Positions 5,730-58,629 are shown, counted from the stretch's first letter. The stretch is 64,000 bases of DNA from Histomonas meleagridis 2922-C6/04-290x (GCA_020184695.1 JAANOX010000014.1:302149-366148); one strand, 5' to 3'. A program made the numbers and translations. Notes: generated from the sequence alone by a model not told the origin.

Positions 5730-6223
5730 TTTGCAGTTATCGTTTCAAAGAAGATGGCGGTTATACGATGGAACAAAAAATCGATAAATATTAAAAAAGT
5801 CATTATAGTACAACAAAGCTAAAAATATCAAAAAGCTATTAAAACGCTTGAAGAATGCAAAGGCCATAAAAATGTGTACATAAATTTTCATGATGCTTAA
5901 TCGAATTTATATGTAAATAATCATGAATATGATAACAATAATATATGGTTTAATTATCTTATATAGTTTCTCAATTTCTATATAACCATTTAGATGCATA
6001 CTTAAGTACTGTTCTAAATAGTTTTAATAATTTTCAATATGAAATATCGAATTGTCAGGGCAGATGAGATGGGTTGAGATATCTCAAGCATTACATCACT
6101 TTTATCTTGTTCAAGAGTGATTTTTCTTTTTTAGATGTAATTATAAGTGCTGTTCTAAATAATTTAAATAATTTCCAAATATCGATTTGCCACAACAATT
6201 TCCTTTATCTATATCTTTATTTA

Positions 6224-9200
6224 TTAATATCTCTTCCACATTTCGTCTTGTTGTCTGTAATCCTCTTTATATTGATTCGGGTCCTCATCTTGCTGTTGCA
6301 TGTTTGCGATTTGTGCCATTGTTAATCTTTTTTCGTTTGCCGGCTTTTTAATTTCTATTTCGTCATCTTTAAATATTTCTCCAGCGTTACCTTGCACGTC
6401 TTCATTTTCGTCGTTGATGATTGCTTGCGCGACTTTTCGTTTTTGTTTTTGTGTTTCCAAAATTCTGCTTTCGATTGTTTCATCTGTAATTAAGTTGAAC
6501 ACTGTGACTTGTTTCGTTTGACCCATTCGATGAGCTCTCGCAATCGCTTGGTCATCGTCAGTGAAGTTCCAACTGTTTTCCATAAATATTACGATGTTAG
6601 CGACTTGTAAATTTAATCCTAATCCACCGACAGATGTGGTCAACAATAATATGTCGGGGCCATCTTCTTTGTTAAAGTTATCGATGATTTTATGTCGATC
6701 TCGTTCAGCTACATTACCATCCAATATTGTATAAGTTAAGCCTTCGATTTTCGATAATAAAATTTCCACTGTAATTTCAATTGTTTGAGTTGACTGTGTA
6801 AATATTAAGACACGATTACGCATTGACGTTTTACCACCACCAAAACCTAATCGTGATAATAATAATGATTTCAATTCTTTAAGTTTCGCCGAATATTCTA
6901 ATAAATGTGGTATCGACGGATCGACTAAACATGGATGAATACATAACTTTCGTTCTTTCTTCATCTTGACAAATGTATGTTCATTAATTTCGTCATCTGA
7001 ATTGATCGCATGTTTAGAACGAATACTTTGTAATACTTCTCGTTGCTTATCAGTCATCTTAAAAACTTCATCATAGATAACCTTGGGAGGTAACTCTGAC
7101 ATGACATTGATTTTTAAACGTCTCATTATAAACGGTAGCACTTGATTGTGTAAACTTGTCAATATCTGTTGGCCCAATTCAGTCTCGAGTTCAGTCGCTT
7201 CTGGCTTAAACATCTTCTTGATTGGGCGTTGATATTTGGTTTGGAACTCTTCTTTAGTACCTAAGAAGCCAGGCATTAAGAAATCCATTAAAGTCCAAAG
7301 TTCAGTAACATTATTTTGGATGGGAGTTCCTGTTAATATTAAACGATGTTGTGCAATAATTTGTACTACAGCCTCGGAAACTTTTGTCGATTTGTTCTTA
7401 ATAATATGACCTTCATCTAATACACAATATACAAATTTCCTTTGTCTTATTATTGGTATTAAATTCCGAACGTTCTGATATGAAATAATTAACAAACCAT
7501 TCATCATATGAAAGTTTTGTACGTTTAATTCCGTTTTCGAGTAAATTGGATTCACATTAATTTGTGGATAAAATTGTTGCGTTTCAGAAGCCCAATGATG
7601 TATAATTGAAGACGGACAAACAATGATACTAAATGCGGAGTTAGAATTCGTTTCAAAATTTTCTTTTGTATGTGCATTCGATATAACAGATAAACATTGA
7701 AATGTCTTACCTAAGCCCATATCATCAGCTAAGATACCATTTAAACCATATTGGTATAAGAACCATAACCAATTAATACCATTGACTTGATAATCTTTAA
7801 TTTTCCCATTTGGTATTGATTCGAAGTTTGGTAATGGGTTTAATATACATTTTGGAGCTTGACTTATATCGAACAATGGCTTTAAATATTTCATTGATTT
7901 GATTTTAGCGTTATGTAAATTATCGGGGAATATACTTAAGTCGCCATCATCCAAAGGCAAAAGTTTAACAATTTGTGCTAATGAATGTGAAGCCATTCTT
8001 CGGATATAATCTTCTTGATTAGCGATATTATACATACAAGTTTCCACAAAGAACGACGCCCATTTTAATAATTTATCTGATTTGACGTCGAAATTTGTTA
8101 ATAATAAATCAATGAATTCGATACAACTTGCAGATAATTTATGTGTATTATCTTGGATAAATAAAACAAATAATGTTAAAAATTGGGAATAATTCTCCAT
8201 TTGACAATAACGATTTGCAATGAATGCTGAAAATGAACCAAAATATCGTTCAGCATTTTGCATTGTATCGATTAACATATATAAATAATTATTTGGTATT
8301 TTCATTTTGGATTCGACACAATAATAAAATTGTAATAATGAATGAATTGATAATAAGTTTTGTGGTGGTTTATATACTGCATTAATTGATATTAATTTCG
8401 ATGTTATTATAATCGGATCACTTTTTATAGTTTTAATTAGTTCTGAATAATGATCAGAATCTTTAAAATTATCATATATCGATTGTTCATTCATTACATT
8501 ACGAAGTATTAATTGTGATATTTCAGAATCACTTTCAGATTCTTTAAGATATCGTCCAACATATTTACAGACAAATAATCGAATCGATGAAAAAAGTTTC
8601 GACGTTGATATTAAAAATTTGTCTTCGATAATTTCCGATGTTTTTAATGTGAATAAACTTAATAATAATCGTAATGGGTCTTTGCTAAAGATATTTGGCT
8701 TAATTCCATCGAAGATTGGAGTAGATGTATCATTATGTAAACATAAAATAATGATAAAAGCAACACTCCAAATCGACTTACAATTCTTAAAGACTGGATG
8801 TTCATCATTAACTTCTAAATAATGTGCTAACTCAATTAATAATGGCATAATGTTTGGTAACTTTTGGATATCTTCGGCTAAATAATCACAAACTTTGACT
8901 GCAAATGTACTATCAAAATAAATACCGCGATATCGCATTAATTCTTGATATTTGTTAATGACATGGATTGATAATGAATATATTTCTTTGTCACGTTCAT
9001 TTAATGAACAATTAAATAATTGTAAAGTATATTGATGAAAATCAAAATCTTCATATACTTCATGATCCTTTAAAGAAAATAATGACTCTAACAATAAATA
9101 AGATGCTCTTCGTGTTGCAATTGATGGATATTGACAATGCGTGACGATAGAAAAAGTGTCTTCGTCAATAAATTCTGAAAATTGACACTTTTCAATGATG

Positions 9201-10159
9201 ACTTTTAAGGCTTTAAGACATGGATAATTATATGGATCGATGTCTTCCGAATTGATAAGAAGTTCCCAGATGCCAGAAGTGATTTGATCAATTTGTGAAA
9301 AATATGGTAAGATTTTCATTACAGCTTTAAGCGCTGCTGCAGTGACTTCATCTGCATCACCAGCTTCACTAAAGGCTTCAAAAAGACGTGGCTGAAGCCA
9401 ATTTGGATCAATACAATTTTTATCAACTTTAAGCATATGATGAACAACAATCCAAAAAGATTGACGAAGTCCCCAATCATCCGTAGATTTACGAAGTCGA
9501 AATTGTTCTAAAATATCTAACCCAGATTGAACATTTTGCATTAAACATCGAGCTAATAAATGTGAAGCAGGTTCTACAACAGGAAATACAACCATGTCAC
9601 CACTAAAGTCTTTAAACCGGTCAAGTGCTAAAAGAGTAAATACTCGAACTGATAAATCTTCTAGATAATCTGAAGGAACATGTGATTGAATAGATCGAAG
9701 TAAACATTGTACCGCACCATGTCTGAATTCCCAACGTTGAGAAGTTAGTTTTGGAATCATATCTTCTGAAATTTGACACAATTCGGATAACCTTGATTCT
9801 TCATCAACATGAAAAGAGGGTATTGAGGTTGATGTACCACGTAATAGTGGTTCACATTTTTGTATGATATCTTCTAGATTAAATGATTTTAGTTTCATAA
9901 AAGGTCGATTTACATTCCATGATTGAAAATTTGGACGAGATAATGGAATTAAATTTTCAAGAGCTATTCCTGCAGCTCTTCTACACTCAAAATCATTGTC
10001 TAAAAATAGTGGATACAATTTAAATAAAATGTATGATAAGTCATATGAAAATTCTTTTTGAAGGTGACCGATTTGTATGGCAGCAACAGTTCGAATTGCT
10101 CTTGTCTTGCCTTTGTGTATAAGATCAATGAGACGTTCGAATTTGTTTTTCTTCGCCAT
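6224..10159 (-). CDS. MOT1: Mot1/BTAF1 TBP-associated SNF2 ATPase
   Basis: N-terminal HEAT region (IRTVAAIQIG, WEFRHGA, LDRFKDFSGDMVVFPV). SNF2 motifs GILADDMGLGKT, LDEGHIIKN, LTGTPIQNN, LLTTSVGGLGLNL, QAIARAHRMGQ. Confidence 0.93.
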   Translation of the reverse strand: MAKKNKFERLIDLIHKGKTRAIRTVAAIQIGHLQKEFSYDLSYILFKLYPLFLDNDFECRRAAGIALENLIPLSRPNFQSWNVNRPFMKLKSFNLEDIIQKCEPLLRGTSTSIPSFHVDEESRLSELCQISEDMIPKLTSQRWEFRHGAVQCLLRSIQSHVPSDYLEDLSVRVFTLLALDRFKDFSGDMVVFPVVEPASHLLARCLMQNVQSGLDILEQFRLRKSTDDWGLRQSFWIVVHHMLKVDKNCIDPNWLQPRLFEAFSEAGDADEVTAAALKAVMKILPYFSQIDQITSGIWELLINSEDIDPYNYPCLKALKVIIEKCQFSEFIDEDTFSIVTHCQYPSIATRRASYLLLESLFSLKDHEVYEDFDFHQYTLQLFNCSLNERDKEIYSLSIHVINKYQELMRYRGIYFDSTFAVKVCDYLAEDIQKLPNIMPLLIELAHYLEVNDEHPVFKNCKSIWSVAFIIILCLHNDTSTPIFDGIKPNIFSKDPLRLLLSLFTLKTSEIIEDKFLISTSKLFSSIRLFVCKYVGRYLKESESDSEISQLILRNVMNEQSIYDNFKDSDHYSELIKTIKSDPIIITSKLISINAVYKPPQNLLSIHSLLQFYYCVESKMKIPNNYLYMLIDTMQNAERYFGSFSAFIANRYCQMENYSQFLTLFVLFIQDNTHKLSASCIEFIDLLLTNFDVKSDKLLKWASFFVETCMYNIANQEDYIRRMASHSLAQIVKLLPLDDGDLSIFPDNLHNAKIKSMKYLKPLFDISQAPKCILNPLPNFESIPNGKIKDYQVNGINWLWFLYQYGLNGILADDMGLGKTFQCLSVISNAHTKENFETNSNSAFSIIVCPSSIIHHWASETQQFYPQINVNPIYSKTELNVQNFHMMNGLLIISYQNVRNLIPIIRQRKFVYCVLDEGHIIKNKSTKVSEAVVQIIAQHRLILTGTPIQNNVTELWTLMDFLMPGFLGTKEEFQTKYQRPIKKMFKPEATELETELGQQILTSLHNQVLPFIMRRLKINVMSELPPKVIYDEVFKMTDKQREVLQSIRSKHAINSDDEINEHTFVKMKKERKLCIHPCLVDPSIPHLLEYSAKLKELKSLLLSRLGFGGGKTSMRNRVLIFTQSTQTIEITVEILLSKIEGLTYTILDGNVAERDRHKIIDNFNKEDGPDILLLTTSVGGLGLNLQVANIVIFMENSWNFTDDDQAIARAHRMGQTKQVTVFNLITDETIESRILETQKQKRKVAQAIINDENEDVQGNAGEIFKDDEIEIKKPANEKRLTMAQIANMQQQDEDPNQYKEDYRQQDEMWKRY

Positions 10160-10729
10160 TTTTAAATATTGAGAGACTTTGTTTGATTTAATGTTACTTC
10201 ATGTAAAAAGTTGATCAACTAACCAACTTCATATCCTTACATGTAATTACTAAAATTTTTTAATATATATTGTGTCTAATTTTGTTTTCATTTAAGTAAT
10301 TAATTTTTGTGAAAATAGATCTTTTGATTTTGAGATGTATTTCATTGTTTTATGAAAAATGTTGTGATAATTCTATTTATTAATGACATTAATATTCTTA
10401 TTGTTGAGTTAAGAATAGGATATAAATATGTTGTATATGTTATGTTATATATGTGTGATTTTCCCCTAGATAAATCTTGGTGTTCTTAACTTTTTGAATA
10501 CATTTTACAGAATGCAATTCGTGGCAAAAGTGACACTTATCATTGACACTTTTCTTCACACATAAATAAAAATATAAATATCTTGCTTAGATCATTAGCC
10601 CCCTTGGGAACGATCGAATGGTATGAATATAAATTATATCTTAATAATAAATATCGAATATTATTTTCCATTATGAGTTAGAATATTTGCCTCAAAATAT
10701 TGAGCTATTTAAATAGGTAAGAAAATTCA

Positions 10730-11380
10730 TTAAATAAGAAAAACACAGAGATATCTCTGATAAAAGTATAGAAAAATATTATATGAAAAAAATAAATAAA
10801 AATTAATTTTATTTACTAAATAAATATTAAAAATGGTATTAAAATTAAAAATTATTATAATAAATTTTAAATAAAACAAATAAATATCTTTAGCATTAAT
10901 ATCAATTCCTTTTTGTTCAAGAAGTAATTTAACTATTTCTGTATGACCTTTATAAAATGCCCAAATAAGTGCTGCATAAAATAAATTAAATAATTTCCAA
11001 ATATAATTTTGAAATAGAAAATTATTAAAATAAATATAAAATAAAAAAATAAATATCTTTAGTATTAATATTAATTCCTTCTTGTTCAAGAAGTAATTTA
11101 ACTATTTCAAAATATTCATTTTCTAATGCACGTAAAAGTGCGGTATCAAATAATTTAAATAATTTCCAAATATTATTTTGAAATATCAAATTATTAAAAT
11201 AAATATCAAATAAAACAAATAAATATCTTTAGCATTAATATCAATTCCTTCTTGTTCAAGAAGTAATTTAACTATTTCTATATAACAATTTCTAGATGCA
11301 TACATAAGTGCTGTCCATAATATTTTAAATAATTTCCAAATATTATTTTGAAATATAAAATTATTAAAATAAATTTGAAA
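10730..11380 (-). repeat. Inverted orphan fragment of a spacer-interrupted ankyrin array (3 modules)
   Basis: Minus-strand modules TALMYAS.., TALLRAL.. and AALIWAF..EIVKLLLEQ.GI.IN.KD start at 11314, 11144 and 10975 (periods 170 and 169; the latter has a T-run one base short). Same spacer family as 17713-18571. Confidence 0.85.
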
Positions 11381-12666
11381 TAATTGATGTTAATTCAAAA
11401 AATACAATAAACACAGGAGATAAAAAATTGAATAATCTATCAACCAGCTTGAAATTCTTAATCGAGCTTGAGAAAACTATATTCAGTTTAACCGAAAAAA
11501 ACATACAGCCATCCATTAAAAAAGTATTGGAATTATTCGATTCAAATTATCCCTATACATTTAATAGTATTATAAGTAACATGGTTTATAATGCATTTTC
11601 ATCACTAAAACATGAATTTGATATTTACTTAAATTTTTTAAAAACACTTCAAACGAAAGAAGAAGAAAATAATCAAAGTGTCGATAAACTAATTTCAATT
11701 TTTATCAAACGTATAACTGAAATCAACACACAAGAATCATATTATTTAATGGAGAAACTAATTGAACAAAATTTGATTGATAAAAATATTACCAAAAATA
11801 TTAAATCGAGATATTTTTCTCATTATCAGGCAAAAGAAGAAAACCAAATCCACATAGCATTTGGAAATGATCCAATAGAAAAATACTTTTTGGATCATTA
11901 TGAAGAACTTTCAAAGAATGATTGGGAGCTTCATAAGAAATATGTTAAAGAAGGACATAATCCAAATGACATTGCGAAAATAATTCGAAATGATGAAATA
12001 GAAAAACTTCAAGAAATATCATCACAAACAAATTTTGATTTTAATCAATTTATTATGCCATCACTTTATGAAAGATGTTCATTTATTAATCAAAAGAATG
12101 TTTCATTAATTGATTATGCAGCATTTTTTGGATCAATTAAATGTTTTAAATATTTACTTATGAATAATGCAAATGTAAATAATACAGGTAAATATGCAGT
12201 TGCAGGTGGAAATGAAGAAATCATTCATTTATGTGAACAAAATCATTCAACATTTGAAGATGCATATGAAGCTTCAATAGAATTTCATCGAAATAATATC
12301 TTTAAATATATTTATGATAACAAATTAGAAGAAATACAACCAAAGTCAATACTTCAAACGCCTGGAGATGAAACTAATCATTTGGTAAGTTTTTGTATCA
12401 AAAAAGATAATTATGATATTTCAGCGTTTTTGGAAGAAATAGGAATTAATGTAAATGCTGATAATTTAAATGAATCAGCAAGAAATGGAAATTTATTTCT
12501 CTTGAAATATTTCCTTCAAAATAATCAAATTCCAAAAAATATTTTGCCATTTGCTTCAGAATCAGGAAATAGTGAACTTGTGAAATATGTTTTAGAACAA
12601 AAAGAAATTGATGTTAATGCAAAAAGTATTCATTTGAATAATTTAGAATATGTTTTAATATTTTGA
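11368..12666 (+). CDS. DUF3447/ankyrin-repeat protein, N-terminal part; no in-frame ATG at the 5' end
   Basis: IAKIIRNDEIEKLQ, SLIDYAAFFGSIKCFKYL and YAVAGGNEEIIHLCEQ are DUF3447-type motifs. The frame ends in the first spacer after IDVNAKS. Frame opens at 11368; first ATG is at 11581. Confidence 0.85.
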   Translation, partial: NKFEIIDVNSKNTINTGDKKLNNLSTSLKFLIELEKTIFSLTEKNIQPSIKKVLELFDSNYPYTFNSIISNMVYNAFSSLKHEFDIYLNFLKTLQTKEEENNQSVDKLISIFIKRITEINTQESYYLMEKLIEQNLIDKNITKNIKSRYFSHYQAKEENQIHIAFGNDPIEKYFLDHYEELSKNDWELHKKYVKEGHNPNDIAKIIRNDEIEKLQEISSQTNFDFNQFIMPSLYERCSFINQKNVSLIDYAAFFGSIKCFKYLLMNNANVNNTGKYAVAGGNEEIIHLCEQNHSTFEDAYEASIEFHRNNIFKYIYDNKLEEIQPKSILQTPGDETNHLVSFCIKKDNYDISAFLEEIGINVNADNLNESARNGNLFLLKYFLQNNQIPKNILPFASESGNSELVKYVLEQKEIDVNAKSIHLNNLEYVLIF

Positions 12667-15404
12667 AACATGTTTTAATAATTTATAATATGTTTTAATA
12701 ATTTGTAATATGTTTTAATAATTTGTAATATGTTTTAATAATTTGGAATATGTTTGAATAATTTGAAATATGTTTTAATAATTTGAAACAGCACTTCATA
12801 TAGCAGTTAGAAATAATAATATAGAAATAGTAAAATTACTTTTAGATAAAGGAATTGATGTTAATGCAAAAACTATTCATTTGAATAATTTGTAATATGT
12901 TTTAATAATTTGTAATATGTTTTCATAATTTGGAATATGTTTTAATAATATTTTATATGATTCAATAATTTGGAATATGTTTTAATAATTTAGAATATGT
13001 TTTAATAATTTGTAATATGTTTTAATAATTTGTAATATGTTTTAATAATTTGAAATATGTTTTAATAATTTGAAACAGCACTTCATATAGCAGTTAGAAA
13101 TAATAATATAGAAATAGTAAAATTACTTTTAGATAAAGAAGGAATTGATGTTAATGCAAAAAATATTCATTTGAATAATTTGGAATATGTTTTAATAATT
13201 TAAAATATGTTTTCATAATTTGGAATATGTTTTCATAATTTGTAATATGTTTTAATAATTTGGAATATGTTTGAATAATTTGAAATATGTTTTAATAATT
13301 TGAAACAGCATATCATATAGCAGTTAGAAATAATAATATAGAAATAGTAAAATTACTTTTAGATAAAGAAGGAATTGATGTTAATGCAAAAAATATTCAT
13401 TTGAATAATTTGGAATATGTTTTAATAATTTAAAATATGTTTTCATAATTTGGAATATGTTTTCATAATTTGGAATATGTTTTAATAATTTGGAATATGT
13501 TTTAATAATTTGAAATATGTTTTAATAATTTGAAACAGCACTTCATATAGCAGTTAGAAATAATAATATAGAAATAGTAAAATTACTTTTAGATAAAGAA
13601 GGAATTGATGTTAATGCAAAAAATATTCATTTGAATAATTTGGAATATGTTTTAATAATTTAAAATATGTTTTCATAATTTGGAATATGTTTTCATAATT
13701 TGGAATATGTTTTAATAATTTGAAATATGTTTTAATAATTTGAAATATGTTTTAATAATTTGAAACAGCACTTCATATAGCAGTTAGAAATAATAATATA
13801 GAAATAGTAAAATTACTTTTAGATAAAGAAGGAATTGATGTTAATGCAAAAAATATTCATTTGAATAATTTGGAATATGTTTTAATAATTTAAAATATGT
13901 TTTCATAATTTGGAATATGTTTTAATAATATTTTATATGATTCAATAATTTGGAATATGTTTGAATAATTTGAAATATGTTTTAATAATTTGAAACAGCA
14001 TATCATATAGCAGTTAGAAATAATAATATAGAAATAGTAAAATTACTTTTAGATAAAGAAGGAATTGATGTTAATGCAAAAAATATTCATTTTAATAATT
14101 TGGAATATGTTTTAATAATTTGAAATATGTTTTCATAATTTGGAATATGTTTTCATAATTTGGAATATGTTTTCATAATTTGGAATATGTTTTAATAATA
14201 TTTTATATGATTCAATAATTTGGAATATGTTTTAATAATTTGTAATATGTTTTAATAATTTGGAATATGTTTTAATAATTTGAAATATGTTTTAATAATT
14301 TGAAACAGCACTTCATATAGCAGTTAGAAATAATAATATAGAAATAGTAAAATTACTTTTAGATAAAGAAGGAATTGATGTTAATGCAAAAAATATTCAT
14401 TTGAATAATTTGGAATATGTTTTAATAATTTAAAATATGTTTTCATAATTTGGAATATGTTTGAATAATTTGAAATATGTTTTCATAATTTGGAATATGT
14501 TTTAATAATATTTTATATGATTCAATAATTTGGAATATGTTTTAATAATTTGTAATATGTTTTAATAATTTGTAATATGTTTTAATAATTTGGAATATGT
14601 TTGAATAATTTGAAATATGTTTTAATAATTTGAAACAGCACTTCATATAGCAGTTAGAAATAATAATATAGAAATAGTAAAATTACTTTTAGATAAAGAA
14701 GGAATTGATGTTAATGCAAAAACTATTCATTTGAATAATTTGGAATATGTTTTAATAATTTGTAATATGTTTTAATAATTTGGAATATGTTTTAATAATT
14801 TAAAATATGTTTTCATAATTTGGAATATGTTTTAATAATATTTTATATGATTCAATAATTTGGAATATGTTTTAATAATTTGTAATATGTTTTAATAATT
14901 TGTAATATGTTTTAATAATTTGGAATATGTTTGAATAATTTGAAATATGTTTTAATAATTTGAAACAGCACTTCATATAGCAGTTAGAAATAATAATATA
15001 GAAATAGTAAAATTACTTTTAGATAAAGAAGGAATTGATGTTAATGCAAAAAATATTCATTTGAATAATTTGGAATATGTTTTAATAATTTGTAATATGT
15101 TTTAATAATTTGGAATATGTTTTAATAATTTGGAATATGTTTTAATAATTTGTAATATGTTTTAATAATTTGTAATATGTTTTAATAATTTGTAATATGT
15201 TTTAATAATTTAGAATATGTTTTAATAATTTGAAACAGCACTTCATATAGCAGTTAGAAATAATAATATAGAAATAGTAAAATTACTTTTAGATAAAGAA
15301 GGAATTGATGTTAATGCAAAAACTATTCATTTGAATAATTTGGAATATGTTTTAATAATTTGTAATATGTTTTCATAATTTGGAATATGTTTTAATAATA
15401 TTTA
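12628..15404 (+). repeat. Array of 10 near-identical ankyrin modules (TALHIAVRNNNIEIVKLLLDKEGIDVNAKN) separated by 20-bp minisatellite spacers
   Basis: Thr codons at 12788, 13075, 13305, 13535, 13765, 13995, 14305, 14635, 14965 and 15235. Spacer unit ATATGTTTTAATAATTTG(G/T/A)A. Confidence 0.95.
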
Positions 15405-15704
15405 ACTGCAATTCAAATTGCACAAGAAAAAGGTTACACAGAAATAGTAAATTTACTTCGTGAAAAAAGTATAAACGAAAATTTTCAATCAAAATCTTCT
15501 TTTGTAAGCATCAAATCTTCATTTTCAATACGAAATGGAAATGAAGCGTATATTGCTAATAATCAAAATCAACTTGAAGATCAAATTTTCGCAGTAAATA
15601 CTAAAAAGAAAATTACAAAAAGTGTTGATGTAAACACTCAAACATATGAAAACAAACATATTCGTAAAGCAAAATATAAATACATAAAAACAATAATATT
15701 ATAA
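15405..15704 (+). CDS. Putative terminal segment of the ankyrin gene (divergent last repeat plus unique tail)
   Basis: TAIQIAQEKGYTEIVNLLREKSINENFQ...IKTIIL* is open for 99 codons, exactly 170 bp after the previous module. It has no ATG. Confidence 0.6.
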   Translation, partial: TAIQIAQEKGYTEIVNLLREKSINENFQSKSSFVSIKSSFSIRNGNEAYIANNQNQLEDQIFAVNTKKKITKSVDVNTQTYENKHIRKAKYKYIKTIIL

Positions 15705-16521
15705 AGTGAATTATAAGAAAAACTTCAACAAATAATTATAGCAACAATAGTAAGATTTGATAAATTTTCACACAATTTAAACGATAATTCTCCAATCATT
15801 TGAGAATACCGCCACTGATAATAAACGGTCGTTTCAAAAACTTAAAATTCATTTTTCTTTTTTATTTCAAAAAAATATTTAAATTTTAGTGAATATTTTA
15901 AATTTATCTATATGATGATAGTAATATATTTTAATGGTACTGAATAATTTCCAAGAAATCATTCTGAGTATCACATATTGGAGATCCAATTTCACATACA
16001 AAAAATAAAATTTAAAACAGATTTTTAAGTTCACACTCGCTTAAAATCAACAAAGAATAAAATAATTTTTGATCAAGAGGAATCTATTGGCTGTTTTTGA
16101 AATATGGAATCATTGTGATTACTTTTGATATAAGCAAAATTTAAAAAATCTGTCTTGACAAAATTTTTAAAATTAGATAAATTTTGGATACAAGTATATA
16201 ATTTTGAAAAATATATCATATTCATTTCATGAATTAATTTCCAAAATTTGAGAGCTTCCATCTTTAATTGAATAGTTTCTAACTTGGATTTTAACTGGAT
16301 TTTGTTTAAAAGGAACAGTATATGCAGAATTAAATTATTTTGCAGTGAAACTGATTGAATTGGGTTTTATTGATTCACAAAAATTTAAATTTCAGAATAA
16401 TCCATATTTTATACATTACATGTCAATAAAAGAAATTAATTTTTTGAGTAAATCAATAAATTTTACGAATCATTTTCATAGTAATTATGTGTTTAGGATT
16501 GACACAAAAGTGTCATTTCAT

Positions 16522-17751
16522 ATGGAATTTCAAGCAAAAAGCCAAATTCATGGGAACGAATGGGAAACATTACAATATATTAAGAATTTAATATTCAATT
16601 TAAACAAAGAAAATATCATTCAATCTTCAAAATTAATTATAAGTAAATTTGATGATATTTATCCATTATCTTTTAATTTAATTATTGTTAGGATTACATA
16701 TGCAATTGTTATCATGCGAATGAAAGATATTGATTTATATTTGAATTTTCTTAAAGAAATAAAAAAACTAGAAATGAACATTCATCAAGAAATTGATATT
16801 TTTGATATATATGGACATTTTCTTGTTAGTAAGAGTACACAAGAATCATATTATCTTCTTTCCAAAATGATTGAAGATAATTTACTTGATAAAAAAATCA
16901 TTAAAAATATAAAACACTCGATTGCTTCTCAAGGATATTTTGTGCAATACATGCCAAATGAAACAATTAAAGAATTAGGGGATGATAAATTTACTGAATA
17001 TATTCAAAAAAATTATGAAGAACTTTCAAATAATGATTGGGAATTACATAAGAAATTAATTGAAGAAGGAGTTAATCCAAATGAAATTGCGAAAATAATT
17101 CGAAATGATGAAATCGAAAAACTTCAAGTAATATCATCACAACAAAATTTTGATTTTAATCAAACAATTGAACCATCACTTTATGAAAGATGTTCATTTA
17201 TTAATCATTCTAATGTTACATTAATTGATTATGCAGCATTTTTTGGATCAATTGAATGTTTTAAATATTTATTTATGAACAATGCAAATGTAGAAAACAC
17301 AGGTAAATATGCAGTTGCAGGTGGAAATCAAGAAATTATTCATTTATGCGAACAGAATCATTCATCATTTGAAGGTGCATATGAAACAGCAATTATGTTT
17401 CATCGAAATGATATTTTTAAATATATTTATGAAAATGAGATTATCGGAATTGATAATTTAGAAGAATTAGGGAAAAAATGTATTACATATCATAATTATG
17501 AACTATTATCATATTTACAAGAAAATGATATGAAAATTAATGACAATATTATTAATGAAGCCGCACAAACAGGAAATTTATTACTTACCAAATATTTTCT
17601 TAAATTCTATCAAATCCCAAAAAATATTTTAGTTTTTTCAACAATATCTGGAAATATTGAACTTGTTAAAACCATTTTAGAAAAAGAAGGAATTGATGTT
17701 AATACTAAAAATATTTATTTGTTTTATTCGAAATTTGAATTAATAATTTAA
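16522..17751 (+). CDS. DUF3447/ankyrin-repeat protein, paralog of 11368-12666, N-terminal part
   Basis: Same DUF3447 motifs. ATG 16522 follows the Inr-like TCATTTCAT, so it is preferred over GTG 16345. The frame stops inside the first spacer. Confidence 0.85.
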   Translation: MEFQAKSQIHGNEWETLQYIKNLIFNLNKENIIQSSKLIISKFDDIYPLSFNLIIVRITYAIVIMRMKDIDLYLNFLKEIKKLEMNIHQEIDIFDIYGHFLVSKSTQESYYLLSKMIEDNLLDKKIIKNIKHSIASQGYFVQYMPNETIKELGDDKFTEYIQKNYEELSNNDWELHKKLIEEGVNPNEIAKIIRNDEIEKLQVISSQQNFDFNQTIEPSLYERCSFINHSNVTLIDYAAFFGSIECFKYLFMNNANVENTGKYAVAGGNQEIIHLCEQNHSSFEGAYETAIMFHRNDIFKYIYENEIIGIDNLEELGKKCITYHNYELLSYLQENDMKINDNIINEAAQTGNLLLTKYFLKFYQIPKNILVFSTISGNIELVKTILEKEGIDVNTKNIYLFYSKFELII

Positions 17752-18571
17752 TATTTCAAAATAATAATTGGAAATTATTTAAATTATTTAATACAGCACT
17801 TCTATTAGCATCTGGAAATGGTTATGCAGAAATAGTTAAATTACTTCTTGAACAAGAAGGAATTGATATTAATGCTAAAAATTTTTATTTGTTTTATTTA
17901 ATATTTATTTGAATAATTTTATATTTCAAAGTAATATTTGGAAATTATTTGAAATATTTTGGTCTGCACTTATTTGGGCATATCTAAAAGGATACATTGA
18001 AATCGTTAAATTACTTCTTGAACAAGAAGGAATTGATGTTAATACTCAAAATATTTTTTTGTTTCATTTAATGTTTATTTTAATAATTTTATATTTCAAA
18101 GTAATATTTGGAAATTATTTAAATTATTTCAAACAGCACTTATGATTGCATCTGGAATTGGTCATACTGAAATCGTTAAATTCCTTCTTGAACATAAAGG
18201 AATTGATGTTAATAGTAAAAATATTTATTTGTTTTATTTAGAATTTATTTTAATAATTTTTTATTTCAAAATGTTGTTTGGAAATTATTTAAATTTTTTA
18301 GAACAGCACTTATTAATGCATCTGAAAATGGTTATACAGAAATAGTTAAATTACTTCTTGAACATGAAGGAATTGATGTTAATGCGAAAGATATTTATTT
18401 ATATTATTTAGAATTTTTTTTAACAATTTCATATTTCAAAATAATATTTGGAAATTATTCAAATTATTTAGAACAGCACTTGTGTATGCATCTGAAAATG
18501 GTCATACAAAAATAGTTAAATTAATTACTCAAAAAGAAAGGAATAAAAGTAATACAAAAAATATTTATTAG
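17713..18571 (+). repeat. Five diverged ankyrin modules, each preceded by an 80-nt AT-rich spacer (period exactly 170 bp)
   Basis: Module starts at 17623 (inside the ORF), 17793, 17963, 18133, 18303 and 18473. TAL..AS.NG..EIVKLLLE.EGIDVN.KN intact in all but the last, which has a divergent C-terminal half. Confidence 0.95.
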
Positions 18572-19771
18572 TTTTACTTGAAATATATTTTTACTATTTC
18601 TAATTTCAAAATAATATTTAATTCCCAATCTCTCATTTCTTCTAAATATATATCTTTCTAATCAATTTCTGATTGTGAAAAAGAATTTAAAAGAAAAATA
18701 ACTTTGTTTGATATAGTTTTAATAATTACGTGGACTGATATTTGTTGATATAAAATGAAAACGCATAATCCAAATACACTGTTAGTTATTCTAAAAGAAT
18801 TAAGTGGAAAGCTGTGTATTGCTGTGGAGCAAAGTGAAGTTGTTTTGGGCATTACTTGGATATTTTTATAGATTGATGTCGTTCCCAATACATAGCCCAG
18901 TAATTACAACTACAAACATCGATATTAATATTTCAGTCGATTATATCCCTGATGAAAGTAGTGAATTCTTTGAAATTTTGAGTTTTACACATTATAATTA
19001 TGTTTTTGTAATTTACAAAATATTTTGTAATTTGTAACTGCTTTTTTGATATAAAACATATAATCTCTTAATTGGTATATTAATTAGGGAATTTTCTTAC
19101 TTCAAAACATTGAATATGTTATTCAACTTGTGAATACTTTTTTGACTTTCAAAAAGAACACTTCCAGTATAAGACACTAAATTTACAAAGGAAAATCATA
19201 AACTTATTAGATGAATATTAAATAAAACATTTGCAATTTCAATCTAATTGACTCCATTTTCAATTAATTTTTTATGAAGTTCCCAATCATTCGATTTCTG
19301 TAGATTGAGAATTATTAATTTTTTTGTTTATTTGATAATGTCACTCGCAAAAAGAAAAAATAAAAAGTGACTTTTAAAAGTTTTCATAATTTCTTTGATT
19401 TGCCAAAAAAAAATAGTTGTTTACATATGTTTTTTGATTTTTTCTACATATAATACAGAAAATATGGAATTGATATGTTTCATAATATCTTTAGATCAAT
19501 ATAACTTTGTTAGGACATTTTAAAAAAAGGATAATTTACTTGTTTTTTAAATTTGATAGATCTTTATTTTGTTTTATGATTTTTTTCATGAAATGTTTGT
19601 TCATCTTGATCGGCTTTTTTTATTCAGAACTTTATATCATTCCTTCAAAGCTAGCTTTTTGTGTTAGCCTATGAAAACCGATCAAATTTGATTATGTTTT
19701 ATTCATTTTGATAATTTTAAATTGATAGCGATTGATAATTTTATTCTTAACGTTCGAAATATAAAAAGTCA

Positions 19772-27848: not shown

Positions 27849-28757
27849 ATGTTTGCGTTTTTACTTGCATTAGGTGCATCAGTAACAACGTACACCGTCA
27901 AATCCGGCGACACACTTTCAGGAATCGCTGTTAAATTCGGTGTTACTGTTTCACAACTTTGCTCATGGAACGGAATTTCAAATCCCAACCTTATCTATGT
28001 TGGCCAAGTTCTTAAAGTTTCTGCTAGCAGCGGTGGTGGCAGCAGCGGCTCATACACAACATACACAGTTAAGTCTGGTGATACCCTTTCAGCTATTGCT
28101 GCAAGATACGGCACAACAGTCTCAGCAATCTGCTCCCTCAATGGCATTTCAAATGCTAACCTTATCTATGTTGGTCAAGTTCTTAAGATCCCAGGCGGCA
28201 GCAGCCCACAACCAACAGCAGCTCCACAACCAACATCAGGATCATCAGTTACAGCTTCCCAAATGCAAAGATTCGGATGGGTTGACACATCATCAACAGT
28301 TATCAACGACTTAAACAGCTGCCTTAGCAGATTCGGAATCACAAACCGTCAATCACGTCTTCACTTCCTTTCACAATGCGCTCACGAATCAGGTCTTGGT
28401 AAGTGGACTAAGGAACTCGCAAGTGGTTCAGCATACGAATATCGTTCCGACTTAGGAAACATTTATGCTGGTGATGGACCAAAGTATAAGGGTGGTGGTT
28501 ACATCCAATTAACAGGCCGTTACAACTACCAACAATTAGCCAACTACCTCGGTGATCAAAACGTCATGCAAGGTGTCGACTATGTTGCCACCCACTATCC
28601 ATGGACATCCGCTGGCTTCTGGTGGTACAGGAACGGAATGAACACACTTTGCGCAAACGGCGCTACAGTTGAGCAAGTTACAAAGAGAGTTAACGGCGGC
28701 TACAATGGTCTTGAATCACGTAGAGCCTACTACAACAAGGCATGTGGAATCTTCTAA
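27849..28757 (+). CDS. Secreted 2xLysM + glycoside hydrolase family 19 (chitinase/lysozyme-like) protein
   Basis: Signal-like [11 protein letters not shown]; two [12 protein letters not shown]...YVGQVLK LysM repeats; GH19 motifs [25 protein letters not shown] and [13 protein letters not shown]. Confidence 0.93.
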
Positions 28758-29205
28758 ACTGGCTCCTTTACTTTAATTTTGGAAATCGAATTTGTGCAGA
28801 TTAATTGAAATGTGTTTAATTAAGATTGCAACCAAAATGTATCTGTTTATTGTGTTGAATGTGTGCGAAATTGATATAAATACTTATGTTTTCGTGAGAT
28901 AAATCCCATTTCGCTTCTTTCTTGATCAAGAAATGAATGTGGTGCAGTTTCAATTTGTATGAGGTGTAAATCGGCGGTTATTTATTGGCTGCACAAAATT
29001 GAGAGGCAACGGTTTATACGTCAATCTGACGAAATGGTTTTTTTTAAAACATAAATTTCTCGACATGAAGAAGAAAACCAGTAAATTTAGTCGAAATGTT
29101 TTTTAAATAACAAAAATTATGTGTAATATTATAATAAGTTTTGATGATTTTGATTATTCTAAGATATAAACAAATTTTTATTTTTGAAAGCATTAAGTCA
29201 AAAAA

Positions 29206-30132
29206 ATGTTTGCGTTTTTGCTTGCATTAGGTGCATCAGCATCAACGTACACCGTAAAGTCCGGCGATACCCTTTCCGGAATTGCCAAGAAGTTCGGTGT
29301 TACCGTTTCCCAATTATGTTCATGGAACGGAATTAAAGATGCTAACAAAATCTATGTTGGCCAAGTTCTTAAAGTTTCAGCCAGCAGTGGTGGTGGCAGC
29401 AGCGGCTCATACACAACATACACAGTTAAGTCTGGTGATACCCTTTCAGCTATTGCTGCAAGATACGGCACAACAGTCTCAGCAATCTGCTCCCTCAATG
29501 GAATTAAGAATGCCAACAAAATCTACGTAGGTCAAAAACTTAAGATTCCAAGCGGCGGATCAAAGCCTCAACCAACAGCAGCTCCAAAACCAACATCAGG
29601 TGGTGGTGGCAGCGGATCAACTGTTACAGCATCTCAAATGAAGAAGTTCGGATGGGTCGACACATCATCAACAGTTATCAACGACTTAAACAGCTGCCTC
29701 AAGAAATTCGGAATCACAAACCGTCAATCACGTCTTCACTTCCTTTCACAATGCGCTCACGAATCAGGCCTTGGTAAATGGACTAAGGAACTCGCTAGCG
29801 GAAAGGCTTATGAAGGACGTAAGGACTTAGGTAACACTCAACCAGGTGATGGTCCCAAGTATAAGGGTGGTGGTTACATCCAATTAACAGGCCGTTACAA
29901 CTATCAAGCATTAGCTAACTATCTTGGTGACCAAAAAGTTATGCAAGGTGTCGATTATGTTGCTAAGCACTATCCATGGACATCTGCCGGTTTCTGGTGG
30001 TACAGAAATGGAATGAACACACTTTGCGCAAACGGCGCTTCAGTTGAACAAGTTACAAAGAGAGTTAATGGTGGTTACAACGGCCTTGAATCACGTAGGA
30101 AATACTACAACAAGGCATGTGGAATCTTCTAA
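29206..30132 (+). CDS. Secreted 2xLysM + GH19 protein, tandem paralog (Lys-rich)
   Basis: Same architecture and catalytic HES motif as 27849-28757. Confidence 0.93.
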
Positions 30133-30357
30133 AGCAGTTCTTGCTTTTGATTTCTTTTGAGAAAGCAAACCAAAATGATCTCAAATTAGCTCAATAAACT
30201 AGTGAAGATCAAAAACTTTTCCAATTTCATGCCGCTATATCAGAGACGACGAAAACTTTTTCTGTGATAATCCACTTTTCAAATGTAAAGAAAACAACAT
30301 TTTGAGTTATTTTTTCAGAGGAAACCGTGGTCACTTCACATTATAATTGAACGTGTT

Positions 30358-30381
30358 AAAACGATAAATATTTATCGTTTT
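30358..30381. promoter_or_regulatory. Perfect 24-bp palindrome AAAACGATAAATATTTATCGTTTT upstream of the malic enzyme gene
   Basis: Exact self-complementarity. It ends 7 bp before the Inr-like TCACTT (30388) and 19 bp before the ATG. Each arm matches ANAACGATA. Confidence 0.65.
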
Positions 30382-30399
30382 TTAAGTTCACTTTTCTCG

Positions 30400-31581
30400 A
30401 TGACTAATTACGCTCAAGAATCACTTAAGCTTCATCAAAAGCTCAGAGGTAAGCTCGAAATCGTTTGCCGTGCCCCAGTTACAAACAAAGAAGAATTATC
30501 CCTTGCTTATACACCTGGTGTTGCCCAACCATGCCTTGAAATCCAAAAGAACGTCGATCTTTCTTACGAATTAACAAGAAGGTGGAATACTGTCGCTGTT
30601 GTTACTGATGGTACTGCTGTTCTTGGCTTAGGTGATATCGGACCAGAAGCTGGCATGCCAGTTATGGAAGGAAAATGCGTCCTTTTCAAGTCCTTTGGTG
30701 ATGTTGATGCTATCCCACTTTGCATCCGTTCCAAGAATGTTGAAGATATTTGCCGTACTGTTGAATTATTAGCTGGTTCCTTCGGTGGTATCAACCTTGA
30801 AGATATCAGCGCTCCACGTTGCTTCGAAATCGAACGCCGCCTTAAGCAAACATGTGACATTCCAATCTATCATGATGATCAACATGGTACAGCTGTTGTT
30901 ACACTTGCTGCTCTTACAAATGCCCTTCGTATCGTTGGAAAGAAGATCGAGGATATCAAAGTCGTTACATCTGGAGCTGGTGCTGCAGGTATTGCTATCA
31001 TCAAACTTTTAATTGCTCGTGGTCTTAATCCAAAGAATGTTATCATGACCGATCGTATGGGAGCTATCTATGAAGGTCGTGAAGGTCTTAACCCAGAGAA
31101 GGAAGAAATCGCCAAGATCACAAACTCTGAAAAACTTTCTGGTTCACTTGCCGATGTTCTTAAGGGTGCTGATGTCTTCATTGGTGTTTCTGCTCCAAAG
31201 ACAGTCACTAAGGAAATGGTTAAGTCAATGGCACCAAATGCAGTTCTCTTCCCAATGGCTAACCCAACACCAGAAATCATGCCAAACGAAGCACTTGAAG
31301 CAGGTGCTGCTGTTGTTGGTACAGGACGTTCTGATTTCCCCAACCAAATCAACAACGTTCTTGCATTCCCAGCAATCTTCCGTGGTGCACTTGATGTTCG
31401 TGCTAAGGATATCAATGATGAAATGAACATTGCTGCTGCTAATGCAATTGCTGACCTTGTTTCCCCAGAAGAACTCAACAAGGATTACATCTTACCTAAG
31501 CCATTCGACCCACGTGTTAAAGATGCCGTCAGTAAAGCAGTCGCTGAAGCAGCACGTAAGTCTGGAGTTGCAAGAATTTAA
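30400..31581 (+). CDS. Bacterial-type NAD(P)-dependent malic enzyme (short ~390-aa form)
   Basis: LSLAYTPGVA, VTDGTAVLGLGDIG, PVMEGK, INLEDISAPRCF, HDDQHGTA, GAGAAG, TGRSDFPNQINNVLAFP. Confidence 0.96.
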   Translation: MTNYAQESLKLHQKLRGKLEIVCRAPVTNKEELSLAYTPGVAQPCLEIQKNVDLSYELTRRWNTVAVVTDGTAVLGLGDIGPEAGMPVMEGKCVLFKSFGDVDAIPLCIRSKNVEDICRTVELLAGSFGGINLEDISAPRCFEIERRLKQTCDIPIYHDDQHGTAVVTLAALTNALRIVGKKIEDIKVVTSGAGAAGIAIIKLLIARGLNPKNVIMTDRMGAIYEGREGLNPEKEEIAKITNSEKLSGSLADVLKGADVFIGVSAPKTVTKEMVKSMAPNAVLFPMANPTPEIMPNEALEAGAAVVGTGRSDFPNQINNVLAFPAIFRGALDVRAKDINDEMNIAAANAIADLVSPEELNKDYILPKPFDPRVKDAVSKAVAEAARKSGVARI

Positions 31582-31739
31582 GTAAAACAATGAAAAGGAT
31601 TTTATGGTACGATAGGAATGAATGAGAAATAATCGTTTTGTTTTCAAAAACCTGAAACTTTGATGTCAAAATCACATTGATGTTAATTGTGTTTACTTTT
31701 CCTTGACATAATCAGCTTTGAGGAAAAACTTAGTCAGGA

Positions 31740-32666
31740 TTAACTTTTGCGGCGAAGCAGTAATGCAATTAAAAGGATTGCAACAGCAATTACTATCCAA
31801 AACCTCTTCTTGGCCTGATCATAGTCTTCGCCCTTTTTTTCAGTGCTCTGTTTTGGATGTTCATATGCTTCTTTCCACTTTTGGATCAGTTGATTGGCTT
31901 CCTTCGACTTCTCCATACTTTGTAAGTCGCTGTCTGTGGGTTCTTTGACTCCAAAAACAATTTTATGGATCTCACAGACAATTGATTTGAATATGTTGCA
32001 TTTTTCAGTGATTGCATCGCGTTCTTTGACGACTTCTTGATAATCAGTAAGTGGAACTGTGTTTTCTGCATCATCACTTAAATCAAGAGTTATGTCACGT
32101 TCTACGATCTCTGGAGATTCTTCTTCGGCTGCCTTTGATTTAATTGAATCAATCTCTTGTTTGAGATTATTCATTTCATCATTTTGATCTTGAACCTTCT
32201 TTTGTTGTGAATTGATTTCTTCAGAAAGTTCAGCAAGCTTGTTATTAAGCAAAGTCACAGCTTCCATTTCTTGAGATGTTTCCTTATCTTGTAATTTGCT
32301 TAATTTCTTTTGTAAACGTTGGTTTTCTTTTTCATACAAATCAATCTTTTCCTTTAATATTTCGTTTTCCTTTGTTAAGTTTTGAATATGTTTTGAGTTT
32401 TCACCAGATCTTTTTCTATTTGCAATCAATTCGGCAAGTTCACGAAGTGGCTTAAAGTCGATAGAGTTTATATGTGCATTCCACGCATTTGGATCACTCT
32501 TTTCAGTTGCAATGTCGGAAATAATGCTAATAGGCCTTAGCAAAAGTGAATCCAATCTTCCTTGGATTTTGGAGTATTGCATAGATTCCCCAGGGAGGTT
32601 CTCTTCCATGAGCTTCATCCCTCTTTGGAACCTTTCCTCGTCTTGAGACGGAGGGTTTGTTTCCAT
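31740..32666 (-). CDS. Coiled-coil protein with a C-terminal TM (tail-anchored)
   Basis: Heptad-rich core; terminal FWIVIAVAILLIALLL followed by RRKS. Confidence 0.75.
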   Translation of the reverse strand: METNPPSQDEERFQRGMKLMEENLPGESMQYSKIQGRLDSLLLRPISIISDIATEKSDPNAWNAHINSIDFKPLRELAELIANRKRSGENSKHIQNLTKENEILKEKIDLYEKENQRLQKKLSKLQDKETSQEMEAVTLLNNKLAELSEEINSQQKKVQDQNDEMNNLKQEIDSIKSKAAEEESPEIVERDITLDLSDDAENTVPLTDYQEVVKERDAITEKCNIFKSIVCEIHKIVFGVKEPTDSDLQSMEKSKEANQLIQKWKEAYEHPKQSTEKKGEDYDQAKKRFWIVIAVAILLIALLLRRKS

Positions 32667-57501: not shown

Positions 57502-58112
57502 ATGAGCTTCAGCATTGAAGAGTTCAAGTACGATATCTGTGCCAAAGGCGTAAAGGCAGTGATGAAGAAATACCACATCGGAAGAGATAGGGTACATGAG
57601 ATTTGTAAAATGTTCGAAATCCAAATCCGAAATTGTGGTCGTTCATCTACTCCTGTAACTCAAGAAGAACTCGCCTATATAATGGCATATAAGCAGGAAG
57701 CTAATGTTGGTTACCAAGCAATGGCAAATGTAGCCAAGAGAGATCAATTTGCATCAAAGTCTCTCACAATATGGAAATGCAAATCAATATATGAACAATT
57801 TAGCTTGTTCCAATTTAATCGTCCAGAAAAAAAGAAAGAGCACCTCAATAGGTTTGTAGCAAAGTATGTCAATCAAGCTTGGTATACTGACCTACATATA
57901 TGGAGCTTCTCCCAGAAGAAAACTATAAGCAATTATATTTAATTGCGTTTATTGATGACAGAAGCATACTGATTATTCATTATTAGATACTTGAGCAAAA
58001 GACAAGTATCTTGGCAATGAACGCCCTCTCTGCTGCTCTGCAAAAAGGAGGAGTTCCCAAAACCATTATAATAAATTATGGGACCGAATTTCGTGGACCT
58101 TTCGATCCTTTT
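57502..58112 (+). pseudogene. rve/DDE integrase-like transposase remnant (IS481/IS3-like)
   Basis: NRFVAKYVNQAWYTDLH, then a frameshift to YLIAFIDDRS..IIHY*ILEQKTS..AL...PKTIIINYGTEF. It has an internal stop, the second catalytic Asp is lost, and it is 3'-truncated. Confidence 0.8.
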
Positions 58113-58129
58113 GGTGTCGTTTGATTAAC

Positions 58130-58502
58130 CCAATTTAAATAAATGATTGAATATTGATTCTGGAAAATGGTTATATTGTGGGTCATTGTAAAGTTCTGCT
58201 ATTTTGGTTTGTATTTGTGTTTCGGAATAATATGGATTTTTTGTTAAATCATTGTTTAAACAATTATGTTCTGATATTAGCAAATATTTGAAATTCTCAG
58301 TATCTTGACTGAATTCTACTTATAGCTTTGCTGGACACTTGTGCAAAGAAAACCTACTTCCATGAATGCATCTGTAATATGCGCGTCTAAAGTTTTTCCT
58401 CCCATAGGTATCAAATGAATATGTAAAGTCATCTATGTCTATATGAGCAGGTGTCCAAGATTGTCGTTTCGTGTATCTATCAGGCCATTCGATTGTTTGC
58501 AT
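58130..58502 (-). pseudogene. WRKY/FLYWCH-type zinc-finger fragment, probably from a Mutator-like transposase
   Basis: YYRCIHG...CPAKL*VEF...SEHNC: C-C-H-C pattern continues across a premature stop. Confidence 0.55.
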
Positions 58503-58629
58503 GTGAAAGATAAACTAAAGAAAGTTAGTTAAAAAAAAGTCAAATCGACAGGACCAATGGAATGACAAAAATAAGATTAAAAATGAAAATATTAAATATT
58601 AATCAAAATAATTTGTGTTTGCATTGTGC

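Follow-up and report, generated by a model that had tools for sequence, protein, structure and literature searches.

Parabasalids are textbook intron-poor eukaryotes, with few introns and very strict splicing signals. Their spliceosomal introns fall into two length classes, type A (56–196 nucleotides (nt)) and type B (23–28 nt), and run from GT to AG, with a 5′ motif GYAYGY or GTWYWD and a fused branch and 3′ site reading RCTAACACAYAG or TCTAACH(1-2)AACAG; genes of T. vaginalis have one intron each and those of T. stableri at most two (PMC12316389). The published genome of the parabasalid Histomonas meleagridis, a parasite of poultry, sequenced with Oxford Nanopore Technologies (ONT) and Illumina reads, spans 43 Mb at 28% guanine-plus-cytosine (GC) content, and about 5% of its genes have a predicted intron (PMC8529796). 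Here, we analyse an ankyrin-repeat array in a 64,000-nt stretch of the H. meleagridis 2922-C6/04-290x genome (JAANOX010000014.1:302149-366148; hereafter the window), position 1 of which corresponds approximately to position 491,562 of record WSYJ01000052.1. The array follows an open reading frame (ORF) that encodes a DUF3447 domain and ankyrin repeats, and its ankyrin cores are separated by untranslatable spacers whose lengths vary in steps of 20 nt. We find that a 170-nt unit, consisting of a 90-nt core and an 80-nt spacer, is a family-wide architecture and not peculiar to this focal array, a point missed by an earlier note on the same DNA. We put at roughly 0.55 the probability that the focal array is the 3′ part of an unannotated, start-less DUF3447–ankyrin paralogue, the 20-nt steps of which reflect neutral slippage in never-translated, recently amplified spacer DNA.

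Membership of the ankyrin/DUF3447 family was assigned with the Pfam models PF00023, PF12796, PF13606, PF13637 and PF11929 at scores above the gathering threshold. The upstream ORF matches Ank_2 at 35 bits (cut-off 27.3) and DUF3447 at 31 bits (cut-off 26.9), and the ORF of a neighbouring gene matches likewise. The upstream ORF ends within the first spacer, at a stop codon (12664–12666) 37 nt past its last ankyrin core. Ten further cores, 96.7–100% identical to one another, start at 12788, 13075, 13305, 13535, 13765, 13995, 14305, 14635, 14965 and 15235; the core length is 90 nt, except for the first of the ten, which is 87 nt long. Anchor motifs inside these cores lie at 12800, 13087, 13317, 13547, 13777, 14007, 14317, 14647, 14977 and 15247. 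Profile anchors place the periods at 250, 287, 230 (four times), 310, 330, 330, 270 and 170 nt, the 287-nt period being a 290-nt unit minus one core codon. Measured from the end of one core to the start of the next, the 11 spacers are 160, 200, 140 (four times), 220, 240, 240, 180 and 80 nt long; each is composed of 5 nt (ATTCA), 20k nt and a final 15 nt, and every length is divisible by 20. The earlier note had read the periods as 170+20n, occurring in all three phases while the modules stay intact, and both the anchors and the direct measurement of cores and spacers reproduce this series, the periods modulo 3 taking every value. Its further observation, that the last period of exactly 170 nt leads into a 99-codon terminal frame with a unique tail, holds as well: the frame is open from 15399 to 15701 (101 codons, 99 of them from 15405 onwards) up to a stop at 15702–15704, and only 2e-5 of composition-preserving shuffles are equally open. 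The terminal segment has no Pfam match, and its tail had no homologue in a collection of 5.8 billion proteins.

The length steps derive from the 20-mer TTTTAATAATTTGGAATATG, which has 79 matches with up to three mismatches (0.16 expected), all but one of them located between 12633 and 15389. Tandem Repeats Finder (TRF) detected a 20-nt period with 125.8 copies, together with higher-order periods of 230, 270 and 330 nt. The focal spacers are mosaics of about 17 variants of the 20-mer, related in order and unequal in copy number, which is the pattern expected of slippage or unequal exchange. The 20-nt period falls within the tandem, head-to-tail units of 10–100 bp that characterize minisatellites or variable-number tandem repeats (VNTRs), and the copy number of the 20-mer differs between the 11 paralogous spacers of a single array. 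The earlier description of the spacer as a VNTR can be kept in this sense, of 20-mer variants present in unequal numbers among the spacers of one array. The 20-mer joins the two best-conserved motifs of the family spacer, TTTTAATAATTT and TTTGGAA, and a 20-nt deletion between ATTT repeats would yield exactly this sequence.

The 170-nt unit recurs in the neighbouring gene, at the H. meleagridis locus L003 (WSYJ01000186.1), where a 475-codon ORF is followed by 19 cores, and on the metagenome contigs L001, L008 and L009, the last two of which are 97.5% identical to each other and carry 15-unit arrays. Among the short-read metagenome contigs, L002 and L007 also hold family members, and L003 additionally contains a decayed array behind a family copy broken by a mariner-type element. 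None of the arrays that we saw is annotated in the Histomonas record. For 28 diverged 170-nt units, we compared the cores with the 63-nt insert part of the spacers, using a neutral simulation at the observed divergence. Cores and inserts lie at similar distances from their consensus (0.253 and 0.252, respectively). All 28 cores are stop-free, against a neutral expectation of 27% for each (P ~1e-16), and 11 of the 28 spacer inserts are stop-free, for which the neutral expectation is 28%. Because the cores stay stop-free while the spacer inserts gain stops near the neutral rate, it appears that the cores downstream of spacers were read as protein during divergence and that the spacers were not. 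Second codon positions are the most conserved in the cores, which is the pattern of coding sequence. For the ratio of nonsynonymous to synonymous differences per site (pN/pS), we obtained 0.62 for the L003 array, 0.55 for L008 compared with L009, and about 1 for the five cores that follow the neighbouring ORF. Decay is visible in the array that lies behind the transposon-disrupted L003 copy, which has six stops in its cores and seven frameshifting insertions or deletions (indels; −1, +1, +17, −7, +11, +1 and −5 nt). The focal cores themselves are too alike to hold any selection signal.

When the spacer is translated in the frame of the core that follows it, a conserved peptide appears, KYLFVLFxIYFNNFIFQNNIWKLFKLFxTAL (spacer peptide, FQNNIWKLFKLF). 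In the 153-nt units of the family, this peptide is in frame and, across ten metagenomic ORFs, exceeds the variable ankyrin positions in conservation: Q, N, I and K do not vary, and conservation of Y, F, W and L is at least 90%. One 171-nt unit is likewise in frame. The 17 nt by which a 170-nt unit exceeds a 153-nt unit are a duplication of the ATTTATTT motif at the insert’s 5′ end. Distant DUF3447 relatives, including the Tritrichomonas foetus protein P0015, have plain contiguous 99-nt repeats (...DVNSKNKQNETALH...). Since the peptide is conserved in frame in the 153-nt units and the repeats of distant relatives are contiguous, the spacer is probably a former ankyrin-loop insertion of 21–27 residues that has since fallen out of frame. 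The stops in present-day spacers are single-step products of the old codons (CAA to TAA, TGG to TGA, and TTA to TAA or TGA). A profile of the spacer peptide retrieved 50 short ORFs from among 1.84 billion representatives and yielded no transcript or protein evidence of joined cores. The peptide had no match in a scan of JGI metagenomes, and the N-terminal domain retrieved from them only distant relatives with contiguous repeats. An AlphaFold prediction for an in-frame ORF of 153-nt units was of low confidence (pLDDT 64, pTM 0.31) and was not used.

We next consider how the cores could be joined. In each of the 11 focal spacers, the upstream frame runs into a stop 60–96 nt beyond the anchor, and TAA TAA blocks the downstream frame two codons ahead of the next core. 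Thus, no single frameshift links neighbouring focal cores, and the earlier claim that no single programmed frameshift or readthrough can translate the array is borne out, both frames being closed in every spacer. A single −1 or +1 frameshift likewise finds no frame overlap in 8 of the 19 L003 spacers and in several L008 spacers, and the overlap windows that do exist share no common site and no conserved X XXY YYZ slippery heptamer. When a Euplotes-like shift (+1, −1 or +2) is applied to every stop, no more than about a third to a half of units return to frame, which is the chance level. Stop-codon reassignment is ruled out by window ORFs of 1,000–2,400 codons (maximum 2,402) under the standard code. 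Overlapping mini-cistrons (57 codons with a 1-nt overlap, giving 170 nt, with TGATG or TAATG junctions) fit arithmetically, but on our reading of the alignment a stop and an ATG are both present in only a few units. Translational bypassing would have to cross gaps of 80–240 nt without structure; a GAA...GAA pair occurs in most focal spacers and is lost in the spacer starting at 12875, which has TTG TAA in place of TTG GAA.

Canonical splicing was also rejected, as a comparison over all offsets and intron lengths gave no conserved GT–AG or AT–AC pair. We enumerated frame-restoring GT–AG, GC–AG and AT–AC introns unit by unit and compared them with shuffled spacers; frame-restoring GT–AG introns are available in 3 of 11 focal spacers and in 15 of 50 family spacers, against 17.6 expected from the shuffled spacers. 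The parabasalid 3′ intron motif CTAACACAYAG has no match with up to one mismatch in the window. The spacer 3′ ends read ...AATAATTTGAA or ...AAATTATTTnnn, without a fused branch site and 3′ site, and the apparent AG of the spacer sits in Thr-Ala codons that vary synonymously (ACC GCA, TCT GCA). RNAalifold returned no conserved pairs for 22 spacers, and Rfam returned no matches at E up to 1. The spacer ends show no conserved consensus beyond T-runs, where the internal eliminated sequences (IESs) of ciliates are TA-bounded with the consensus TAYAGYNR. A search with a 468-residue paralogue retrieved only genomic or metagenomic ORFs that end at the first spacer. The earlier note had argued that the spacers must be excised if the array is expressed; that they are untranslatable stands, while their excision, with neither conserved intron termini nor a 3′ motif nor RNA structure to mark it, is only conditional.

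With no splice signals, no start codon, no annotation and no tail protein, the three phases of the focal array are more plausibly a side effect of slippage than something designed. The focal copy appears to have been amplified recently, as indicated by the near identity of its cores and by the 20-mer variants shared among its mosaic spacers. We propose that one core-plus-spacer unit of this copy was amplified approximately ten-fold, very recently, by unequal crossing-over, and that the fused 20-nt spacer piece grew through replication slippage to produce the focal spacers of 80+20n nt. Both the length steps of 20 nt and the three phases would then be neutral consequences of slippage in DNA that no ribosome reads, and no recoding device would be involved. 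The focal copy would also have lost the start codon that should stand before the conserved N-terminal block: the first in-frame ATG of its ORF is at residue 52, inside this block, and homologues begin 8–20 residues before it. Of the usual marks of a pseudogene, the focal copy shows a lost start codon and lacks in-frame stops and frameshifts. No gene is annotated over window positions 10164–15733 in the public record (GCA_020186115.1, WSYJ01000052.1). In frame just upstream of the focal ORF, positions 11374–11427 read ..FEIIDVNSKNTINTGDKK..., in which the 3′ half of an ankyrin core runs directly into the N-terminal region; this fragment, beside an inverted orphan array, suggests a rearrangement junction or breakpoint. 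Expression of the focal copy is doubtful, and the locus may be a dead copy and the least informative member of its family. For the family as a whole, other members keep open the cores that follow spacers, and from this we infer non-canonical removal or skipping of the spacers, by a route that would use neither GT–AG nor ACTAAC signals.

Several observations weigh against this account. The 412-codon ORF, the ten cores and the improbably open 99-codon tail show that the focal copy is not visibly decayed, and it could therefore be expressed from another start. Across about 35 diverged units, family spacers hold to exactly 80 nt (83 nt in one subclass), and their TGG and TTT/TTC positions are preserved in the manner of coding sequence, features that are unlike plain non-coding DNA or ordinary introns. 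Moreover, none of the routes tested provided a mechanism for joining the cores. A broader proposal, which we put forward only tentatively, is that Histomonas-type parabasalids possess lineage-specific intervening sequences, in which an intronised ankyrin-loop insertion of 80 nt, signal-less and breaking up every repeat throughout the family (5–19 times per gene), would be removed or skipped by a new mechanism that tolerates 20-nt insertions (two helical turns).

Somewhat more doubtful is the idea that the spacers are non-canonical intervening sequences removed from RNA, such that the focal protein would contain about 11 repeats of 33–34 residues and a 99-residue tail, with junctions predicted near ...DVNAKNI(H)/FETALH... 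and with spacer length free to vary because the spacer is spliced out. This idea accommodates the selection that holds cores, and not spacers, open, and the closure of arrays with a capping core and a hydrophilic tail, like a true C terminus. Spacer-free junctions occur at the same site in L001 (KNVMFESAL, period 102) and L003 (period 99), and the contiguous repeats of distant relatives have a 4-residue link ending in E, with which the predicted focal junction agrees. It has to contend with the absence of conserved GT–AG or AT–AC termini and of the 3′ motif, with frame-restoring GT–AG pairs no commoner than in shuffles, with the lack of any RNAalifold pair or Rfam match and with a candidate AG that lies in synonymously varying Thr-Ala codons; the fixed spacer length of the other members is not needed by ordinary introns, the focal ORF has no start codon and no spliced product is on record. 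We regard it as unlikely that nothing past the first spacer was ever translated, with proteins ending in a short hydrophobic tail read from the spacer and with arrays that are relics or satellite-like 170-bp DNA, kept intact through recent duplication or gene conversion. All 13 of the closest metagenomic ORFs and three Histomonas ORFs do stop just past GIDxNAK(D/N)I, the arrays are unannotated, relic units are scattered between genes, the pN/pS of the five neighbouring-array cores is near 1 (0.55–0.62 elsewhere), and the 170-bp period with its phased T-tracts recalls satellite DNA. Yet the cores within an array are old (pS 0.52, approximately 64% identity between units), and neither a stop nor a frameshifting indel occurs in 570, 450 and 150 core codons, where neutrality would leave 27% of cores stop-free; the sole array known to be dead does carry stops and indels, and no functional donor copies for gene conversion were found.

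The remaining explanations fare worse. That the irregular periods are an artefact of long-read assembly within a tandem repeat is very unlikely: the assembly is ONT-based and polished with Illumina reads (PMC8529796), and near-identical repeats of 230–330 nt are hard to polish, but the 170-nt unit and its untranslatable 80-nt spacers are also present in the independent short-read metagenome assemblies L001, L008 and L009, and the focal spacers differ by whole 20-mers in distinct variant orders and not by homopolymer errors. The exact 20-mer copy numbers of the focal array could nevertheless be wrong. An action of the spacers in DNA, either as IES-like elements excised by a helical-phase-sensitive, transposase-like system or with the cores as silent gene-conversion cassettes, has very little to commend it. 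The spacers of 80 and 80+20n nt comprise whole helical turns and their T-tracts are phased at about 10 nt, a mariner-type element has been active in the same family locus, and the cores pair a conserved framework with variable surface positions; set against this are the lack of a TA-bounded end consensus and of a cassette expression site, and second-order selection on donors would be too weak to account for zero stops in about 1,300 codons. To our knowledge, neither nuclear dualism nor programmed DNA elimination is known in parabasalids. Translation of the array by recoding, whether −1/+1 frameshifting, a shift at stops, readthrough or ribosomal bypassing, is the least credible of all. Periods across the family are 170, 173, 116 and 113 nt (2 modulo 3) or 153, 150, 102 and 99 nt (0 modulo 3), the value 1 modulo 3 is not represented among the 19 periods of the L003 gene array, all five spacers of the neighbouring gene have overlapping open frames, and the 3′ part of the spacer is conserved in a coding-like manner in the frame of the next core. 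Recoding would still have to operate without any overlap window in the 11 focal spacers, 8 of the 19 in L003 and several in L008, with no common site in the remaining windows, no conserved slippery heptamer or structure, a shift at stops that restores only about a third to a half of units and focal spacers that reach 240 nt, a length well above that of known bypass gaps; reassignment of stop codons is contradicted by the long ORFs that the rest of the window contains under the standard code.

Table 1. Core-plus-spacer features of the window (positions counted from its first nucleotide) and classes of unit length in the family.
Feature	Coordinates	Strand	Description
Upstream ORF	11428..12666	+	412 codons; family-specific N-terminal region, DUF3447, ankyrin repeats
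Last ankyrin core inside upstream ORF	12538..12627	+	NILPFASESGNSELVKYVLEQKEIDVNAKS
First spacer	12628..12787	+	160 nt: ATTCA, seven full 20-mers and a 15-nt partial unit
Ten cores and intervening spacers	12788..15324	+	Cores encode TALHIAVRNNNIEIVKLLLDKEGIDVNAKN
Last spacer	15325..15404	+	80 nt, the basic family length; 3′ end TAA TAA TAT TTA before terminal frame
Terminal segment	15405..15704	+	Capping ankyrin-like core (TAIQIAQEKGYTEIVNLLREK) and hydrophilic unique tail; 99 codons and stop
Neighbouring paralogue	16345..18640	+	ORF to 17751, then five cores at exact 170-nt periods with 80-nt spacers; without 20-mer expansion
Inverted orphan array	10848..11383	-	Three 170-nt units; abuts 5′ end of focal ORF
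Decayed relics	5965..6190	-	Two degenerate core-plus-spacer units with stops and internal deletions, between peptidase S28 and SNF2 genes
Period 170 / 173 nt			90-nt core and 80- or 83-nt spacer
Period 153 / 150 nt			Spacer 17 nt shorter, in frame
Period 116 / 113 nt			Spacer 54 nt shorter
Period 102 / 99 nt			Spacer replaced by 12- or 9-nt link

The position of the decayed relics between two genes shows that core-plus-spacer units also exist as dispersed relics. In the 19-unit array of L003 (18069–20449), a pair consisting of a 116-nt (or 113-nt) unit followed by a 173-nt unit occurs three times, six to seven units apart, which indicates that a block of about 1 kb was triplicated. The mariner/Tc1-like element of L003 (11190–12490), with inverted termini (GGGGGTGGAAAAGTACC...) and stops within its transposase ORF, is inserted in the family member P0014, whose annotation reads ‘cask-interacting protein (caskin) 1,2’; the host gene resumes, decayed, beyond the element. 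Among the metagenomic proteins, the stored sequences P0027 and P0063 are not recovered under the standard code from contigs L007 (ERZ25039387 k87_78228) and L008/L009 (ERZ28614869 / ERZ28614817). TAG codons in the DNA appear as Q in P0027 and TGA codons as W in P0063, and these proteins were probably called under an alternative genetic code that masks real stops.

Outside one richer block, the window has a GC content of 18–33%, and it contains long uninterrupted eukaryotic ORFs for an SNF2 helicase, a protein kinase, a class II aminoacyl-tRNA synthetase and a peptidase S28. The richer block (28001–32000, approximately 40% GC) contains a malic enzyme gene (30400–31581) and a LysM-domain gene (29206–30132), and its composition suggests a different origin, for example by gene transfer. 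The SNF2-family gene (6224–10159, minus strand) forms a single ORF of 1,311 codons, and the public annotation gives a 1,060-residue product over the same range, indicating that an intron was predicted inside open coding sequence. A kinase/armadillo gene contains a 144-nt tandem repeat at 40109–40531 (2.9 copies, 95% matches), and the region 58001–60000 has an excess of A over T (AT skew 0.37) with a weak 72-nt repeat at 59428–59591.

The family keeps dozens of ankyrin cores open across untranslatable, signal-less spacers of fixed length. This pattern points to two alternatives: either coding segments are joined by a route that intron pipelines filtering for GT–AG and ACTAAC discard, or repeats that are not translated stay open through some process not recognised so far; on either option, the annotation of Histomonas misses a whole gene family. 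The neighbouring gene and the L003 array are more informative members in this respect than the focal locus.

The arrays can be compared with several known systems. Translational bypassing in gene 60 of phage T4 and at the mitochondrial ‘byps’ of Magnusiomyces crosses gaps of 27–55 nt with matched take-off and landing codons and hairpins; the focal array resembles these systems in having many short untranslatable inserts in one coding sequence, but its gaps are 80–240 nt long and have no structure and no consistent codon pair. Non-conventional introns of Euglena pair their ends, and those of the appendicularian Fritillaria derive from miniature inverted-repeat transposable elements (MITEs) with inverted ends. 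Like the spacers, they are intervening sequences without GT–AG, some of them from repeated elements, whereas in the spacers we found neither end pairing nor an inverted repeat. Animal ankyrin genes with one repeat per exon also carry an intervening sequence at the same point of every repeat, with an exon length equal to the repeat length, and their introns are canonical GT–AG introns of unconstrained length. The introns of parabasalids share with the spacers their short length in an intron-poor lineage, their narrow length classes and, in some cases, their location in repeat-protein genes; the spacers, in contrast, lack the 5′ and 3′ motifs of these introns and number 5–19 per gene. Minisatellites and VNTRs are matched by the head-to-tail 20-nt units, by the interspersed variants and by copy numbers that are unequal among otherwise identical repeats, with the difference that the 20-mer array is here nested in each spacer of a higher-order, protein-coding repeat. 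With the ordinary DUF3447–ankyrin genes of other parabasalids, such as T. foetus TRFO_30244 (P0015) and that of the JGI metagenome contig Ga0074193_1001977 (L026), the family shares a DUF3447 region (25–35% identical) followed by a C-terminal ankyrin array with a capping repeat. In these genes, the repeats are contiguous units of 99 nt (33 residues) without a spacer, whereas in the arrays described here an untranslatable spacer of at least 80 nt lies inside every 4-residue link.

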